From positions 15,438,001 to 15,502,000 of the forward strand of contig OZ059899.1 in the NCBI GenBank assembly GCA_964057225.1: a stretch of DNA of 64,000 bases, written 5' to 3'. The DNA comes from Auanema rhodensis. Its lineage: Eukaryota; Animalia; Nematoda. Made by a program: the position numbers and the translations under genes. Shown one piece after another: positions 57 to 5,996 of the stretch. The notes below the pieces were generated by a model, which made no database searches, had not been told where the DNA came from, and saw only the letters and a list, made by a program, of their open reading frames with translations. Position 1 is the stretch's first letter. The number at the start of each line of letters is the position of its first letter.

Positions 57-1987
57 ATGACGAATGGTATAAACTTGGCAAAAATTAAAGAGAATTTGGC
101 AAAAACAAAGAAGCTCGAGGTGAGTCAGCAGTGTTAAATGAAGTTGAACAATTCCCAGTTAAGCAAACATTAGGAGATAATGATATCGATTATACGATGG
201 CTATGATGGAATCAGATGACGAAGAAACTGACAATACCAACGAAGATAATACTAAAGAACCTGAATATAGTTCATTGTAATTTTTAAAATATTTTACTTT
301 TACGATGACAAATGATTTTTTAAAGAGATGAAGAAAAATATGATGATACTATGAGCAAAGCTGTTAACTTATTAGCTGAAGGAAGTGTTGAAAAACTCAC
401 TGTGGACACGCTCTTCCGAAAACTCAGTGTAATAGGTTCAAATGAATTTCGTATGTTTATTCTAAATTTTCCTTCCTTTCATGTTTTTTATTTGAAGATC
501 ATGCTATTCACTCCTTGGAAGATGCTGAGAATTATATAAATAGAATTCAAGCAACGCATATGGATATTGTTCTAAATGCTAGTGGCCATTTTCAAATGCA
601 TGGTATACTTTAAAATTTTATTTTATTTTACAAAAATTATTTTAAAGATATTTTTGATCGTGTTATCTCTAATATCGTCAATGCTCGCAGTGTGGCGGAA
701 CATAGTGGCAAAGGCCCTGATTTGAATTTGGTACTAATTTCATTTATGTTTCTAATTTTGATTCTTGGACTTTGCAGTGTCTGGCATGGCTAGCTTTTGC
801 ATGTCAAGGCCAAGTTGGAGATATCATACCTCCAGGTGAACAATTCCCTTACGCTGTTCAGTATATTGCTAAAAAACTTAAAAATACTTCTCTTCCCAAA
901 GTAGCTAATAGTGAAAGATTAGAGTTAGCTACATGTCAGGTACAGAAGTACTAAACAGACGCATATTACTATTTCTTTTTTTGCAGATTTCTCGTGTTTT
1001 CGAGTTTTTAACAGTTTGTGATTTATGTAATCAGAGTCCTGAAGACAGGGCTATTTTACTTTTTTCAATTGCACGTATCATTCTCGATAAATCAGCTCAA
1101 GCACATATACACTTTAAGGCCATTGATGTTATAGCAAATGTACGTTTTTTCAACCAAAACAAATTATATGTATGTAACAATGATGTTAATATTTGATTTT
1201 CAGATAATCAATGCTAGCTCTTTAAATCGAAGATCTGTGATTGTGGAATTTTCGCGACTTTTCTGTTTAATATCAGGTTTGTTAGAAGAGGCATTTTCAT
1301 AATTATGGACCTACTGCCAGTGTAATCACATAGAAACAGTAGCCTTCTCTTTCAGATGATTTCTGCGCTTTACGCTTTGTTTTTGAATGTTTCCGTCTTG
1401 CACCTATACCACCATATGCTTTACTATGTTTAGTTTCCACAGCTTTTATATCAGCCAGTGAACGTGCGGAATGTGAACCTGAGTTTAACGTACTGTTGTT
1501 TTCTGAAATTGAACACAAATATATTACAGATCTTCTTCTAATTTTATTATGTAATTATCTTTCATTTCAGGAACGAATGACTGATGATGATCTAATAGAC
1601 TCCTATTTTGCCGTTATTACTGACACTTTTTCTGATGCGATGGAAGTATTTGCTAATGTACATGTGATATTTTATTTTTTCAATCTCATCAAACAATTAC
1701 AGGCTAAGAAAAATCAATCAGCATTACTAAACATGCTAGATGCAGCTCTTGTTAAAGATTTATTTGTGTTGGATCATGCTAAAGGCAGTCGCCGGCTAGA
1801 TGAGCTTGCAAAAAGCATCGAACCATATACGGCCAAGCTGGTTAGTCATTAATAAAATTCTGCTTACATTTTTTTATTTCTCCAGCTGGAAAAGAAGGGC
1901 TCCCCCGACGAGGCCATGCTTGAAGCTCACTTACGAACTTTAACTTCAAGACTAAATGTTATCGAACAAGTTATCGCAGATCTCTGA
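57..1987 (+). CDS. Multi-exon (~11 exons) hypothetical protein; acidic N-terminus, Leu-rich helical (HEAT/ARM-like?) body
   Basis: TTTCAG|ATG at 57. Short GT-AG introns join ORF-track pieces (351, 772, 933, 1496) in frame to ...LNVIEQVIADL-TGA at 1985-1987. AATAAA at ~2118. Family not recognised. Confidence 0.7.
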
Positions 1988-3084
1988 GATGAAAAGAAAA
2001 TAGTTTTATTTTTATTGTTGCTTTATTTGAATGCCACAGGTGTATATGTTGTAAATAGATCAGATTTTGGCAAAAAGTTATAATGAAGTACCGGTATGAT
2101 TCGTTGCTTTCCTGTTGAATAAAAATGTTATCGAAGTAAAAAATTATTTTTTAATTCTTTGTCTTATTATGAAGCTTGGGAAAGCCTACAACTATTTATT
2201 TATTAATTTCCAATAATAGTGATCATTGTTTCAAATGGCTCACAAAGCCCGGCAATAACCCCAGGAACTAGAATAGAATTTCACTTAGCAACAAAAAAAA
2301 TAGAAAAACTCGAAATGAATAATTTATAACTGAATTCGTTCTAGGTTAAAGATTGATATTTCACAAAGAATATTATTTTAATAAACCGTGCTTTCTTCAC
2401 TTTTATTAAACTTTCCCATGATAAGTCGTTCTAATGAACAGAAATACCAATGCTGATAAATTTAGAACCCAGTATCTCCCACTCTCCTATTCTTAATTGT
2501 TCTTTCTCTTCTTTTTTCTTAAAGATACACTTTACACGTCATTATCAAATTTCATTGCCGTTTTCATAAGGAATATGGAACAAAACTTGATTTACAGTAT
2601 TGAGTATGAACTTTTAAAATCGGAAAAGAATTAATAGAAATATTTTACTGTCTGATGGTTTATTAGAATAAATTGTGAGACGTAGAATGATTATTTGAAA
2701 ACTTGAAAGTATAAGCAAACAAATACCAATTGAACGATTTTGCTGAGTTTTCCAATTTTTTTTTCAAAACTTGTAAATTCTTTTTTTTTCTGTTGTTTTT
2801 ACAATCAAACATCTGAAGGCATTTATACTCCTTTAAATTATATCATATTCAACCAAAAAAAAGAAAAATATTCATTATCAGTTGAAAAAGCAACTTTAGT
2901 ACAAAATATTTGATAAAATATGATTCCTTACCTCTCAATATTGAACTTTTCACTTTATTTATAACAAGATCTCTGCGTTTTTCATCTCTTTTTTAAAGTT
3001 TTTGGTCAAATGTTTGCAAGCATAGTCTAAACGTGAATGATGCTCTCCTCGTTTTCCATGATGTCTTTTATTCTTTTTAAAAAG

Positions 3085-3338
3085 TGACGTCATGCCGATA
3101 TTGCAGTCGGTTGTGCAATAGGGGCGGAGCCTGCTGTCCCTCGATTGTCGTATGATTTTCATTGTATTTCCATACGTTCTTTCCAACTTACTCGCACGTG
3201 ATTTTCCTTCATAAAGCATATTTTCTTCAAAGATTAATGAAAATCCAAGATTTCAACATTTGGAATTCTTGCAAATTTGTTTAGTTAGGATTCTATTTAA
3301 TCGATATCTAGCTTTTATACTAATCGATATATGAGTCA
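3085..3338 (+). promoter_or_regulatory. zip-2 promoter motif cluster (CRE, C/EBP-like, GC box, E-box, AP-1)
   Basis: TGACGTCA 3085-3092, TTGTGCAAT 3111-3119, GGGGCGGAGC 3121-3130, CACGTG 3195-3200 and TGAGTCA 3332-3338, all upstream of the acceptor at 3448. Confidence 0.5.
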
Positions 3339-3522
3339 TTCGGACACGTTTTAGGCCAAAGCGGTCTTTTCTCAGCTTTTCATTTTTTTCTTTTAATATT
3401 TTAGTCTTTAAAGTAATAACATATATTAATTCTTGTTTTATTTTTCAGTTAGGACTCGAATCGGGGTCCCACCTCATCCTTAAAGCACAGAGCTTCCTTC
3501 AGCGTTTGCCGTTGCTAAGTAA

Positions 3523-4863
3523 CCGTCTCCCAACAGGTGATTATTTTGTTTTTTAATTTCACATTCAATTTCATTTTCTTCTTTTATTCAATTTTTTTCA
3601 GTTTTTGCCTCCGTGTCGCTTCAAGCGCTCGTTTGTCTTCTATCTTCGAAGACCTTAATTACAATTTCGAGCAACAATGTTCAAGTCATCCGCTGCAATT
3701 TATAACTCCTCAATGGAGTCCAGAAAGGCCTGCGAGACTCGCCTTTTTGGCGAGGCCTCCCTCGCCAGATCCGGTAAAATAATCAACTATGTTATTCCTT
3801 ACCATCGGCTTCTTGTTATAGCCGGACCTGTTATCCAGAACCAGCGAGTCTCTGTTACCTCACGACAACAGTTGGTTCGTGACCCAACAGTGAGTGAAAG
3901 AACAAATAGTAGAATCCATGAAGATTCTAAATGGGAAAACTAAACATAATTACAATATGTTTAGGTACAATTACGAACCAGCTCCGGATTTATCAAACTG
4001 CGAGTTAATTGTGACCCAGGATACCAGGCATCGAATACAAAGCGGGACCAGTACCTGCTCACGGATTGTGCCTTCACCACAAACGAATTCTCCGACTATG
4101 TCTGCTCACCAATGGAACGAGAGTCCGAATCGTATTTTGAACGGTACATCAAAACAACTGAAAGAAAATAGATGAATTTACCAATTTTTAGACGATTCCG
4201 AAATGAAAGCTTACCACGAGGAAACCAACGAATGGTCCTCTGTCACTGATTCACAAAGTAAGCTCTATCGGGGGTCTGAACAAGTTTTAACTGCGAGTAA
4301 TTACAGCGTTTTACCAATCTACTTACTCGCATGATATATACTATGCGCCCAACGAGGACCTCGATATAGAAGCAATGTCTAACTGCGATATTACTGAACT
4401 GGACCAGTACCTTCACTCAGATAATCTTCAACCCTCAACCTCCCATGATATTCTGCCTACTCAACATTTCCCTTCTGCTAACGATCCTTTACAAGAATTC
4501 TTTCCTTCACTCTCTAGTGGAGGATCTTCTCCAGAATCGATTGAATGGTTATCGTCTCCTTCTCATAGTGGCTCTGAAACTGCTTCCCCTTCTACTTCTA
4601 CGTCAACCTCTCATAATAATCGTCGCTCAACTGGCAACAAAGCTACGAATAAGGATAGCTTATATCGTGTTCGTAGAGATAAGAATAACTTGGCTTCTCA
4701 GAGGTCAAGAGCCAAGCGACAAGACAAAGTTAAAGAAATGAAGCAATTAGCCAATAATCTAGAGAAGTATAATGTTGAGTTAAAGGCCAAAGTTTCTTCT
4801 CTAGAAACTTTAGTTGAAGATTATAAGAAAACAATGCTCATGTTGATGTCCAGCAACCGTTAA
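3523..4863 (+). CDS. zip-2: ZIP-2-like C/EBP-related bZIP transcription factor (main frame; first in-frame ATG only at 4098)
   Basis: Exons 3449-3536, 3602-3773, 3822-3889, 3965-4143, 4192-4257, 4307-4863. Basic-zipper YRVRRDKNNLASQRSRAKRQ...LETLVEDYKK. Motifs DPLQEFFP, DDSEM and VTQDT resemble C. elegans ZIP-2 as recalled. Confidence 0.85.
3677..4249 (+). CDS. Upstream overlapping ORF (oORF, 133 aa) in the -1 frame of zip-2
   Basis: First AUG of the spliced mRNA. 97+68+179+58 = 402 nt, stop-free over 4 exons, ending TGA 4247-4249 (MFKSSAAIYNSSMESRK...NQRMVLCH*). Confidence 0.7.
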
Positions 4864-5996
4864 TTGTATTGTTTATTCTCAATACTCTCTCGTTTTGCAT
4901 GTTTTCTATTAATTTTGAGGTTTAGATTAGATAATTCATTTATTCTTTGAACATATTTTGATTTTTCTTTGAATATTGGTCTCTACTATTTATTGGGTTT
5001 CTTTGTATTCATTATCGAACAGCTTTCATTTTTTTTCTAAATGTATGATCAATAGTCGTTGAAATGAAGCTGAATTCTAATATTGCTTGTATTATCTGTC
5101 TGAATACCTATCATCTTACCATTCACATTGGTTATCAGCGATTTTCCGATTGCCTATAGTTGAGTCTACAATAGTGAAAAGGAAAGTTCTCAGGTTGAAA
5201 AGATGATGATTCATTCGATATCAAGGGCAAGGGTCTATAGTAAAAACGTTTTCCATTGATCTTTAATACAGAACAAAATTTTGATTCTGCGATGAATCAA
5301 AAGTTAAATCGGAGTGACGCGTCTTATGTGTCTCAAATTCTAACCTAGAGAAGACATCATCTTTGATTCGATGAAAGAATTTGTGTTAAAATCATTAGGA
5401 GTGGCTGTTTTTCCGTAGCAAACGGTTAGAATATGTGAAACAACTGGCAAAGTTTTATCTCAAAAAAGCTGGAAAGAGTTGAGAATTCGAACTTCAAGAA
5501 TATACATTCATATCGAGGGCATTAAGAATAATTTTAAGAAATCAAAGAAATCAAAGAGAAATCATATCAGAATATTATGAAAAAAGCAATTGCTTTGATG
5601 GATAAAATGTATTTATATTTTAACATAATAAGGAAAAGAAAGTTTATGGGAATATCCGCCTACTCATATTCCCTTGAATTTCTTCCCATGCTACATTAAC
5701 TTTTCCTTACCTTTTCTCAGACATAAGAATTGATTTCATTCAAATTGTGATTAATACCATTCTATCATATCTTTTTATCAATTCCTCTGAGACTAGGCGG
5801 AAATTGCTTTTAATTTTATTTTGATTTTTTAAAAAAAATAATAATAGCTTCTTTGTGCAAAAAAAAAGAAGAAATACTAACATTTTATAGTAAATAAATT
5901 TTTGTTTAAAAAGAAGTGATAGAAAACTCATTCACTATTCGTATGAAAGTTTGAAATCTCTTCTATCTTAAGCATTTCTAAAAACTTTTTTAGATT

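Follow-up and report, generated by a model that had tools for sequence, protein, structure and literature searches.

The gene at 3449-4863 on the forward strand of the window, by which we mean the whole 64,000-nt stretch of DNA analysed, is, judged by its sequence, the single-copy orthologue of C. elegans zip-2, a bZIP factor of nematode immune defence. We propose, with a probability of about one half, that the full-length protein of 336 aa starts at a near-cognate UUG at 3633, and that the long ORF opened out of frame by the first AUG (the oORF) would act as a ribosome trap. The in-frame UUG and the coding leader that follows it are new observations, and are valid for C. elegans too.

ZIP-2 is the best-studied case of an animal sensing pathogens through the harm done to its translation apparatus. 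As to how a single mRNA may report elongation speed, the model in which the oORF overlaps the main ORF (mORF) and is left by a +1 frameshift was published for C. elegans only in 2025 (Kniazeva & Ruvkun, PNAS 2025, PMC11831180). An earlier note on this DNA had mentioned that proposal, correctly as the paper shows.

Identity of the gene and structure of the mRNA

The C-terminal part of the protein matches the Pfam bZIP_2 domain above the Pfam cut-off (Table 1), and in an exhaustive profile search, made in one direction, the top matches were Auanema, strongylid proteins and C. elegans ZIP-2 (Q21148, E = 4e-17). Outside the bZIP domain the protein has the motifs common to ZIP-2 proteins, namely CDI..LD.YLH, EFFP, the WPPSPP type and NC(D/E)LIV. 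With regard to the N-terminal part, RPPSPDPP and NCELIV in the bZIP frame, hereafter the main frame, are matched by WPPSPPLPP and NCDLIV in C. elegans ZIP-2. The earlier note had named the gene zip-2 and had seen ZIP-2-like N-terminal motifs in the main frame upstream of 4098; domain, profile search and shared motifs support the name, and the motifs are homologous to the N-terminus of C. elegans ZIP-2. No paralogue was found in its own genome. Protein identity to the nearest relative, Auanema sp. JU1783, is 62-72%.

All five introns are confirmed by RNA, as the earlier note had recommended, and with them the full splice model, since contigs of four runs, whose label as RNA was a guess, skip exactly these GT..AG introns and can therefore derive only from spliced RNA. 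The four runs show one single form, with no base or indel differences from the genome and no upstream exon in the contigs, which may miss rare isoforms. Contig depth, which is not an expression measure, is about 10x higher in runs X3/X4 than in X1/X2. The contigs have 5' ends at 3443, with one mismatch and five extra letters; an SL1 tail (TTTGAG against genomic TTTCAG) fits these ends, so that the mRNA most likely starts at 3449 by trans-splicing. The leader is interrupted in C. elegans too, by an intron that lies directly before the UUG block. The Auanema gene model P0001 reads through the equivalent of intron 4.

A hairpin is predicted close to the 5' end, and equivalents of the form GGGACC-N7/8-GGTCC(C), with variable loops, are present in C. 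elegans, C. brenneri and species L014, L005, L006 and L008. Consensus folding yielded no informative covariation, the automatic alignment having put the variable loops out of register, and no compensatory changes were seen; the support for this predicted hairpin lies in its conserved arms.

Table 1. Features of the zip-2 locus, in positions of the window
Feature	Position	Strand	Remarks
Exon 1, 5' leader	3449-3536	+	RNA contigs, joint 3536/3602; without AUG
5'-proximal hairpin (GGACUC / GGGUCC arms)	3452-3469	+	predicted within the first 60 nt
Intron 1, within leader	3537-3601	+	GT..AG, skipped by contigs of four runs
Exon 2 (UUG, segment S1, oORF AUGs, U-tract block)	3602-3773	+	splice model and RNA contigs
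Near-cognate UUG in bZIP frame, candidate start of 336-aa ZIP-2	3633-3635	+	in frame in 13 species
Segment S1, main-frame coding stretch before oORF AUG (acidic/aromatic peptide, LS.D.FEDF type)	3633-3676	+	
oORF (133 codons, -1 frame, spliced across introns 2-4; second AUG 3713; stop 4247-4249)	3677-4249	+	
U-tract block with CUU UUU GGC (3743-3751), main frame AFLARPPSP	3737-3759	+	both frames read Phe on the U run
Local hairpin over U tract (10 bp)	3746-3769	+	dG -24.7 kcal/mol, z -3.2 (60-nt segment, window)
Intron 2	3774-3821	+	GT..AG, skipped by RNA contigs
Exon 3	3822-3889	+	splice model and RNA contigs
Intron 3	3890-3964	+	GT..AG, skipped by RNA contigs
Exon 4 (NCELIV motif; first main-frame AUG 4098-4100)	3965-4143	+	splice model and RNA contigs
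Intron 4	4144-4191	+	GT..AG, skipped by RNA contigs
Exon 5 (main-frame AUG 4203; oORF stop 4247-4249)	4192-4257	+	splice model and RNA contigs
Intron 5	4258-4306	+	GT..AG, skipped by RNA contigs
Exon 6 (rest of CDS, stop 4861-4863, then 3' UTR)	4307-5082	+	contig ends 5040-5082
bZIP domain	4651-4809	+	Pfam bZIP_2 PF07716, E = 3.8e-12, residues 115-167 of window:4309-4860

Two overlapping frames, and a main frame without an early AUG

The leader has no AUG. The first two of the mRNA, at 3677 and 3713, belong to the -1 frame, and the earlier of them has A at -3. The main frame is closed by a TAA at 3520-3522 and open from 3523 onward; its first AUG is that at 4098, which lies 298 spliced nt after the oORF AUG and about 100 nt before the oORF stop, and from which 222 aa would be made. 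All the coordinates that the earlier note gave, including the 133 codons of the oORF over three introns to 4249, were confirmed. It had also remarked that both frames are free of stops, and this is not due to chance: if the main-frame protein is kept and its synonymous codons are redrawn from the gene's own usage (an exact calculation), the probability of an open -1 frame is about 4e-9 for the window and between 1e-4 and 1e-8 for seven further species. In the third frame the overlap stretch contains 2-9 stops.

The same layout of oORF and main frame was found in 13 nematode species, with an oORF of 112-186 codons in the eight that have transcript support. For C. elegans zip-2, conservation was reported within Caenorhabditis only, and non-AUG initiation is not mentioned (PMC11831180). 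The early main-frame AUG is absent in three species (the window, Auanema sp. JU1783 and L006), which represent two lineages, and in all three the main frame is stop-free upstream. In the comparison of the window with Auanema the main frame upstream of 4098 is under purifying selection (OR 1.9, p = 0.017). As there is no main-frame AUG before 4098, and the main frame upstream of it is homologous and selected, the long form of ZIP-2 is, on this comparative evidence, dependent on an entry to the main frame that uses no AUG. The locus in the window and those in the other two species are in effect natural knock-outs of the main-frame AUG that have retained the N-terminal coding sequence, from which it follows that the early AUG is dispensable and that entry without an AUG would be the normal route and not a laboratory curiosity.

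There are two ways in which such an entry could be avoided. The first is that only the 222-aa protein is made, from AUG 4098 by leaky scanning, and that the main frame upstream is a relic of an ancestor with an early AUG. Just two AUGs precede 4098, both in one frame, so that some leaky scanning is possible; the 222 aa retain the bZIP domain and the CDI..LD.YLH and EFFP motifs, and the Auanema gene model begins at the AUG equivalent to 4098. However, a relic is difficult to reconcile with the purifying selection just described, which is also seen in segment S1 (N/S 0.12, window/Auanema), or with the frame having stayed free of stops in three AUG-less species of two lineages, and AUG 4098 is inside the oORF, behind a well-placed AUG. 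We consider this explanation improbable.

The second is that an in-frame AUG exists but is hidden, on an exon not seen, through alternative splicing or because the assembly is wrong in frame. Contigs do drop rare isoforms, and exon 2 of the window has no main-frame stop before the UUG, so that an alternative exon joined at 3602 could read through. However, the RNA-confirmed mRNA, with its SL1-like 5' end, has no main-frame AUG upstream of 4098 and agrees with the genome in every run, and independent sequences also lack the AUG, namely the Auanema genome and two separate transcript contigs of L006. Furthermore, in C. elegans and Auanema exon 2 itself has an in-frame stop shortly ahead of the UUG, by which any AUG from an upstream exon would be cut off. 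A hidden AUG is in our opinion extremely unlikely.

In the case of the oORF peptide, selection was not detected in two pairs outside Caenorhabditis, window/Auanema and L005/L006 (OR 0.7-1.2), in line with an overlap that codes chiefly in the main frame. In Caenorhabditis it is weak per frame, and main-frame synonymous change is strongly suppressed across the overlap (OR 0.29, p = 6e-7), which is dual constraint. We also considered that the oORF might be long in order to put its stop near the last exon junction and so avoid NMD; this applies to Auanema and to the window, where the stop precedes the junction by 8 nt, and was rejected as the C. elegans stop is 280 nt before it.

The conserved UUG and the coding segment ahead of the oORF

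All 13 species have a UUG, or GUG in the case of L011, in the main frame at a distance of 44, 47 or 50 nt upstream of the oORF AUG. No in-frame AUG was found ahead of it, and in eight species an in-frame stop 3-4 codons upstream leaves the UUG as the sole good near-cognate codon. Its context is poor by Kozak rules, with C at -3 and U at +4, and we found neither a favourable start context nor a conserved structure adjacent downstream, a hairpin by the UUG being confined to the window, Auanema and L005.

The stretch between the UUG and the oORF AUG, segment S1, evolves as protein-coding in the bZIP frame. Minimum changes by codon position are 10/6/27 (p = 7e-5), with the proviso that S1 is short, at 15-17 codons, that counts are accordingly small and that the alignments were built on main-frame translations. 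Under the same proviso N/S is 0.12 for window/Auanema and 0.06 and 0.29 in two other clades, with odds ratios of synonymous against non-synonymous change of 12 (p = 4e-4), 23 (p = 3e-5) and 3.9 (p = 0.07) in the three clades. The synonymous rate equals that in the bZIP-only region, and all indels are multiples of 3. In contrast the 110 nt upstream, taken as control, have no periodicity (13/17/18, 12/16/15 and 13/14/15) and have gaps of 1 and 4 nt. Similarity in S1 is weak in L010 and L011.

Two other sources of this pattern were rejected. An RNA structure could be proposed from a GUCUUC/GAAGAC hairpin, which is present in the window, Auanema and L005 only, with z of -2.4 to +1.8. An antisense ORF, or one in another frame, could give periodicity, but every other frame has stops in several species, and the main frame is the only one of the six to be open throughout S1 in all 13.

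The published genetics of C. elegans zip-2 bear directly on the point of entry. The mORF AUG is not required, induction is almost abolished by a stop at codon 15 of the main frame, and a stop in the oORF about 45 nt after its AUG leaves induction by hygromycin normal (all PMC11831180). Taken together these place entry into the main frame upstream of the 45-nt point. Loss of the oORF AUG de-represses the factor, and induction is by elongation inhibitors only and not by initiation inhibitors (PMC11831180).

The U-tract block and possible frameshifting

The principal alternative is that ribosomes start at AUG 3677 and shift +1 (equivalently -2) into the bZIP frame, whether programmed or induced by stress, for example on the U run at 3743-3748; the product would have about 321 aa. 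Frameshifting is also the model published for C. elegans, with genetic support. The earlier note had proposed CUU UUU GGC as the slip site, and it does lie at 3743-3751, within what is by nucleotide comparison the most conserved piece of the mRNA, a block that is thus special in some way. Nowhere else in the mRNA do the window and Auanema share so long an identical run (23 nt), and the same applies to L005 and L006 (25 and 23 nt), the two being independent species pairs. Every lineage checked has a run of U4-5 that either frame reads as Phe, so that one tRNA could re-pair after a shift. To this can be added the strong hairpin over the site in the window (Table 1), the dual constraint on the overlap in Caenorhabditis, and the induction of a zip-2 reporter by norspermidine also.

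There are difficulties with frameshifting as the route of entry. As the main frame is coding upstream of the oORF AUG, a shift out of the oORF cannot account for S1, nor does it account for the conserved in-frame UUG or for the frame that runs unbroken and free of stops from S1 into the rest of the main frame in 13 species. The heptamer CUU UUU G is found in only four species, being replaced by GUU UUC G (in GUU UUC GGC) in C. elegans and by CUU UUC C in O. dentatum. The homologous site in C. elegans is 105 nt after the oORF AUG, and the engineered oORF stop, about 60 nt upstream of it, did not impair induction, so the site is not needed in that species. We looked at the slip site for a conserved stimulator, which might be a structure downstream or an A-site codon that is hungry or a stop, and found none: the A-site codon is a common Phe codon, and the U-tract hairpin has less strength in Auanema and is not seen in other species (z -1.4 to +0.8), for which reason a conserved frameshift-stimulating structure was rejected. 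The oORF peptide is without detectable selection outside Caenorhabditis, and the authors of the C. elegans model themselves describe the shift as rare and not as programmed. We regard frameshifting as a possible but less probable source of full-length ZIP-2.

The earlier note had inferred that the C. elegans mechanism is conserved in this nematode, and that either a frameshift or a non-AUG start would be obligatory for the long form. What stands is the overlap layout, which extends well beyond Caenorhabditis, and the requirement for entry without an AUG, for which a non-AUG start fits the conserved UUG; what the evidence does not bear out in the form proposed is the +1 frameshift as that route.

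A proposed UUG start with the oORF as trap

The conservation of the UUG suggests it as the candidate start, and initiation there would work as follows. Most scanning ribosomes would pass the weak UUG and initiate at the strong AUG 3677; translating out of frame, they would run past the main-frame AUGs inside the oORF, and little ZIP-2 would result. The minority starting at the UUG would make the full-length factor, which would include the conserved acidic/aromatic N-terminal peptide and the Pro-rich block of WPPSPP type. More speculatively, if elongation is slowed, ribosomes started at the AUG would clear it slowly, and scanning complexes would back up in a queue as far as the UUG and initiate at it more frequently, so that the mRNA would sense elongation with no frameshift needed. 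The queuing step we infer purely by analogy. Elongation inhibitors are known to raise non-AUG initiation by queuing (Kearse 2019, PMC6601509), and queuing at a near-cognate start of AZIN1/ODC type is attributed there to Ivanov 2018.

We would extend this, tentatively and at a little under even odds, to rhabditids generally: in C. elegans as elsewhere full-length ZIP-2 would be UUG-initiated and not a frameshift product, and elongation stress would be sensed by queuing over the UUG.

Several observations count against the UUG start. The published C. elegans ribosome profile is described as oORF-only under normal conditions, the Kozak context of the UUG is poor, and neither the conservation of the U-tract block nor the suppression of synonymous change across the Caenorhabditis overlap is explained by it.

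If the UUG start is true the published frameshift model would be reinterpreted, and zip-2 would be a natural, whole-animal case of queuing-driven start-site selection as a pathogen sensor. The conserved UUG and coding leader reduce the choice between a frameshift and an alternative start to a one-mutation experiment in a tractable animal. With regard to annotation, the data suggest that present gene models may lack about 40 residues at the start of C. elegans ZIP-2, and over 100 in the protein described here. The N-terminal part left out includes the conserved acidic/aromatic peptide, which resembles an activation motif.

Comparison with known systems

The closest likeness is to C. elegans zip-2 itself, in which the first AUG also opens a long -1-frame ORF over the N-terminal third of the bZIP protein with both frames open, and which has motifs, leader intron, 5' hairpin and a promoter module in common with the gene in the window. 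They differ in that C. elegans has a main-frame AUG 73 nt after the oORF AUG, and this early mORF AUG is missing in the window, Auanema sp. JU1783 and L006.

In the case of the Ty1, antizyme and EST3 +1 sites the resemblance is that CUU followed by a U-rich codon could let peptidyl-tRNA re-pair, within conserved surrounding nucleotides. However in zip-2 the A-site codon is neither rare nor a stop, a conserved stimulator is lacking, and the heptamer is not conserved in C. elegans. We know of no trans-frame product of zip-2.

ATF4 uORF2 and GCN4 also have an inhibitory upstream AUG ORF, one that overlaps the bZIP coding region out of frame. In contrast the zip-2 oORF has 112-186 codons and is not a short uORF, there is no re-initiation module of uORF1 type, the published induction is by elongation and not initiation defects, and in the window the main frame has no AUG at which the long form could be re-initiated. 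The features of delayed re-initiation were looked for in zip-2: no AUG precedes the oORF, and those of the main frame that come before its stop all fall within it.

The upstream conserved coding regions of AZIN1/ODC type have a conserved peptide and a weak non-AUG start, use of which would rise with slow downstream elongation, and a Pro/Trp-rich block follows downstream (PPW in AZIN1/ODC, WPPSPP in zip-2). There the non-AUG ORF is a separate, repressive upstream ORF. In zip-2 the arrangement would be reversed, with the non-AUG start opening the main ORF itself and the out-of-frame AUG ORF acting as the repressor, and with queuing proposed by analogy.

Gene structure and RNA support

The zip-2 gene of the window is represented in four public RNA runs, in which the stretch is present at about 0.6 of sampled words, and contigs of all four (1.26-1.34 kb) skip precisely the five GT..AG introns of the model in the table, with zero base or indel differences from the genome. 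Every coordinate that the earlier note gave for zip-2 is correct. The spliced mRNA has its first two AUGs at 3677 and 3713, both in one frame, and they open an overlapping ORF (oORF) of 133 codons that ends at TGA 4247-4249. The bZIP frame, or main frame, is +1 relative to the oORF; it has a TAA at 3520-3522, is open from 3523 and has its first AUG at 4098, which gives 222 aa. The window zip-2 is a genuine, RNA-supported dual-frame mRNA.

Two contigs start at 3443, each showing a single mismatch and an additional five letters. The genome has TTTCAG at 3443-3448 and the SL1 leader ends in TTTGAG, which fits the mismatch, and the pattern of contig starts (the contig letters themselves are not displayed) thus points to an SL1 trans-spliced 5' end at 3449. 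No contig of the four runs extends upstream of zip-2 between 2170 and 3375, and we consider it very improbable that a hidden AUG or an artefact accounts for the structure.

The oORF stop is 8-10 nt upstream of the last exon junction in the window (4247-4257) and in Auanema sp. JU1783 (L001 mRNA 592-602). Avoidance of NMD by this proximity is not general, as the C. elegans oORF stop is 280 nt before the last junction. Contig depth over the transcript (3449-5082) is about 10-fold greater in runs X3 and X4 (484, 513) than in X1 and X2 (61, 37), depth being a poor measure of expression, and the adjacent upstream gene also differs in depth between these runs. Contigs of that gene continue into unlike sequence before its listed start, so there is a further exon upstream.

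Positions of zip-2 and associated features in the window and in related sequences
Feature	Sequence	Position	Strand	Remarks
zip-2 exons	window	3449-3536, 3602-3773, 3822-3889, 3965-4143, 4192-4257, 4307-4863	+	splice signals listed across 2800-5400
bZIP_2 domain	window	last zip-2 exon	+	E = 3.8e-12
Upstream neighbour gene	window	1571-2135	+	expressed; spliced contigs with introns 1658-1702, 1840-1884
Promoter module	window	3085-3135		conserved; ~170-330 nt 5' of trans-splice site
Promoter module	other loci	L001 3098-3148; L002 ~1920-1990; L013 ~910-980; L012 ~1794-1850		
GC-rich 5' hairpin	window and others	window 3452-3469; L004 6-24; L005 7-24; L006 6-23; L008 14-31; L013 1147-1165; L014 34-52		few nt past trans-splice site

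Orthologues and flanking elements

A word-indexed search found one close relative, a protein of Auanema sp. JU1783 (62% identity), and the next best in an exhaustive search are strongylid bZIP proteins and C. elegans ZIP-2 (Q21148, E = 4e-17). The 181-Mb genome has a single copy of the gene. The main frame 5' of AUG 4098 carries counterparts of C. elegans ZIP-2 residues 7-90, with AFLARPPSPDPP for GFSAWPPSPPLPP and LSNCELIV for QPNCDLIV, so this stretch is homologous to annotated C. elegans coding sequence.

Our comparisons cover 13 species: the window; Auanema sp. JU1783 (L001, splicing by homology); C. elegans (L004, L002), C. brenneri (L013), C. bovis (L012) and one further Caenorhabditis transcript (L014); three related species (L005, L006/L007, L009); a lungworm-like strongylid transcript (L008); Oesophagostomum dentatum (L016); and two more distant transcripts (L010, L011). 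With regard to public annotation, the Auanema sp. JU1783 model (P0001; L001 4065-4109) starts at the late AUG and reads through the intron-4 equivalent in frame (GEEFIEKRVWNIEIV). Haemonchus models seem faulty too, one (P0002) with oORF sequence apparently joined to the main frame and another (P0004) an AUG-less 'partial' model reading the leader. The gene seems to be systematically mis-annotated owing to its dual-frame architecture.

The promoter module has, in order, TGAC(G/A)TCAT, ATTGC., GTTGTGCAATAG and a GGGCGGAG-like box, and its CRE-like and C/EBP-like bZIP sites are common to the window, Auanema, C. elegans, C. brenneri and C. bovis, which suggests transcriptional feedback by bZIP factors. 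The 5' hairpin, found in Caenorhabditis, the Auanema group, L005/L006 and a strongylid, has conserved arms (GGGACC / GGTCC(C)) and a variable 7-8-nt loop, with no covariation seen among the species compared; L011 has a different hairpin at the equivalent place, directly 3' of an SL1 tail.

The overlapping ORF and the frame under selection

In C. elegans a 146-codon oORF in the -1 frame, conserved throughout Caenorhabditis, begins 73 nt 5' of the main-frame AUG (Kniazeva and Ruvkun, PNAS 2025, PMC11831180). We find the first AUG of the mRNA in the -1 frame, opening 112-186 codons, in each of the eight species whose zip-2 has full transcript support. When the main-frame protein is fixed and synonymous codons are redrawn from the gene's own usage, the probability that the -1 frame is open by chance is 4e-9 for the window and up to 2.5e-4 for other species, so the two stop-free frames noticed earlier are no accident and the oORF is held open by selection. 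The third frame has 2-9 stops across the overlap.

The window gene is a new member of the known zip-2 kind. Its variant feature is that it lacks an early main-frame AUG, so the long protein can be made only by AUG-independent entry. C. elegans, L005, L008, L010, L011 and O. dentatum have such an AUG; the window, Auanema and L006/L007 do not, their first main-frame AUG being ~100 nt before the oORF stop. L005 and L006 differ in it although they are close relatives, which implies two or more losses or gains of this AUG.

Every nucleotide difference in the overlap was scored in each of the two frames. Those silent in the main frame and altering the oORF occur at 1.5-2 times the frequency of those altering both (window/Auanema OR 2.0, p = 0.003; L005/L006 OR 1.5-1.8, p = 0.03-0.002), and this holds from the oORF AUG to AUG 4098 alone in the window (OR 1.9, p = 0.017), whereas changes silent only in the oORF are not enriched in either pair (OR 0.7-1.2). 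The stretch 5' of 4098 therefore evolves as bZIP-frame coding sequence, and production of the 222-aa short form alone is improbable. Outside Caenorhabditis the apparent peptide motifs of the oORF are shadows of main-frame motifs. Within Caenorhabditis main-frame synonymous change in the overlap is suppressed more than 3-fold (OR 0.29, p = 6e-7), in agreement with the dual constraint already reported (PMC11831180).

A conserved UUG and the segment that follows it

Alignment of the 5' leaders gave a conserved block, GCUCGU-UUG-UC, whose UUG (GUG in L011) shares the bZIP frame and precedes the oORF AUG by 44, 47 or 50 nt in 13/13 species. In eight species it is the only plausible near-cognate codon, as there is an in-frame stop 3-4 codons 5' of it; in Caenorhabditis its rivals are a poor AAG or none. 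The position of the leader intron (window 3537-3601; L002 2216-2345) is kept between the window species and C. elegans, with 31 and 35 nt respectively from the junction to the UUG.

The segment from UUG 3633-3635 to the oORF AUG (S1, 3633-3676) encodes an acidic/aromatic peptide (LSSIFEDLNYNFEQQ in the window, LSFDPFEDFPFDF in L005, LSLDFDGLPEDFF in C. elegans), and of the six frames the main one alone is open in every one of the 13 species. Within three clades codon positions 1, 2 and 3 have undergone at least 10, 6 and 27 changes (binomial p = 7e-5), 14 variable codons are purely synonymous and every indel is a multiple of three. N/S per possible change is 0.12 (p = 4e-4), 0.06 (p = 3e-5) and 0.29 (p = 0.07), the strongest constraint in the gene, with a synonymous rate matching that of the bZIP-only region. 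The control, 110 nt 5' of the UUG, is 56-61% identical, with differences even over the three phases and gaps of 1 and 4 nt. Folding of S1 RNA gave a hairpin beside the UUG in three species only and unremarkable z-scores.

The simplest reading of these alignments is that bZIP-frame translation begins at UUG 3633 and would give a 336-aa protein, to which we assign a probability of about 0.5. That the main frame evolves as coding sequence even 5' of the oORF AUG is a new observation. Non-AUG or near-cognate initiation is not mentioned in PMC11831180, and our literature search found no paper pairing it with zip-2.

Frameshifting as the alternative

The C. elegans proposal is that inhibition of elongation leads to a +1 shift from oORF to main frame (PMC11831180). 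The earlier note described this accurately and gave CUU UUU GGC (3743-3751) as a candidate site of the shift in the window. It was right that the long form needs non-AUG entry, but a shift from the oORF cannot yield the S1 signature, as the oORF starts downstream of S1, and it leaves unexplained why S1 is always in frame and uninterrupted with the rest of the main frame. We therefore regard frameshifting as rather unlikely to be the main route.

In its favour, CUU UUU GGC lies in a 23-nt run (3737-3759) identical in the window and Auanema, the longest of the whole mRNA, and L005 and L006 likewise have their longest identical run in this U-tract block (25 nt plus a 23-nt duplicate). Every lineage checked keeps four or five U in a row, read as Phe in both frames, on which a tRNA could re-pair after a +1 or -2 move. 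The block is constrained beyond the needs of the main-frame protein, which a UUG start does not explain. In L005 (mRNA 249-299) and L006 (241-290) this U-tract/Pro-rich block is tandemly duplicated (PFLERPPS then PFLPWP.PP), both copies being nucleotide-identical between the two.

As an entry point the block fares less well. C. elegans has GUU UUC GGC, and no stimulatory structure is conserved at the U tract, a strong hairpin (3746-3769) being confined to the window and, in weaker form, Auanema. Furthermore, an engineered oORF stop 28 nt before the C. elegans main-frame AUG (~45 nt past the oORF AUG) leaves hygromycin induction normal (PMC11831180), which would confine any shift to the first ~15 oORF codons, and the slip-site counterpart, 105 nt past the oORF AUG, is 3' of that stop.

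Four other C. elegans results bear on this (PMC11831180): the main-frame AUG can be mutated with induction retained; a main-frame stop at codon 15 reduces induction to 1-4%; removal of the oORF AUG gives constitutive activation via the main-frame AUG; and the inducers are elongation inhibitors only, initiation inhibitors being without effect. A start of the inducible product at the UUG, which in C. elegans is 47 nt 5' of the oORF AUG, would predict all five. Norspermidine is also reported to induce the zip-2 reporter.

Non-AUG initiation is known to rise under elongation inhibitors, which slow ribosomes so that scanning complexes queue up behind them (Kearse 2019, PMC6601509; Ivanov 2018, as cited there). 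Elongation stress may likewise increase initiation at the zip-2 UUG, with queuing as the presumed intermediate step. A UUG start and a frameshift could coexist, and the remaining weight goes to something outside the readings considered.

The Pro/Trp-rich block in the zip-2 main frame resembles the PPW pause in the upstream coding region of antizyme inhibitor.
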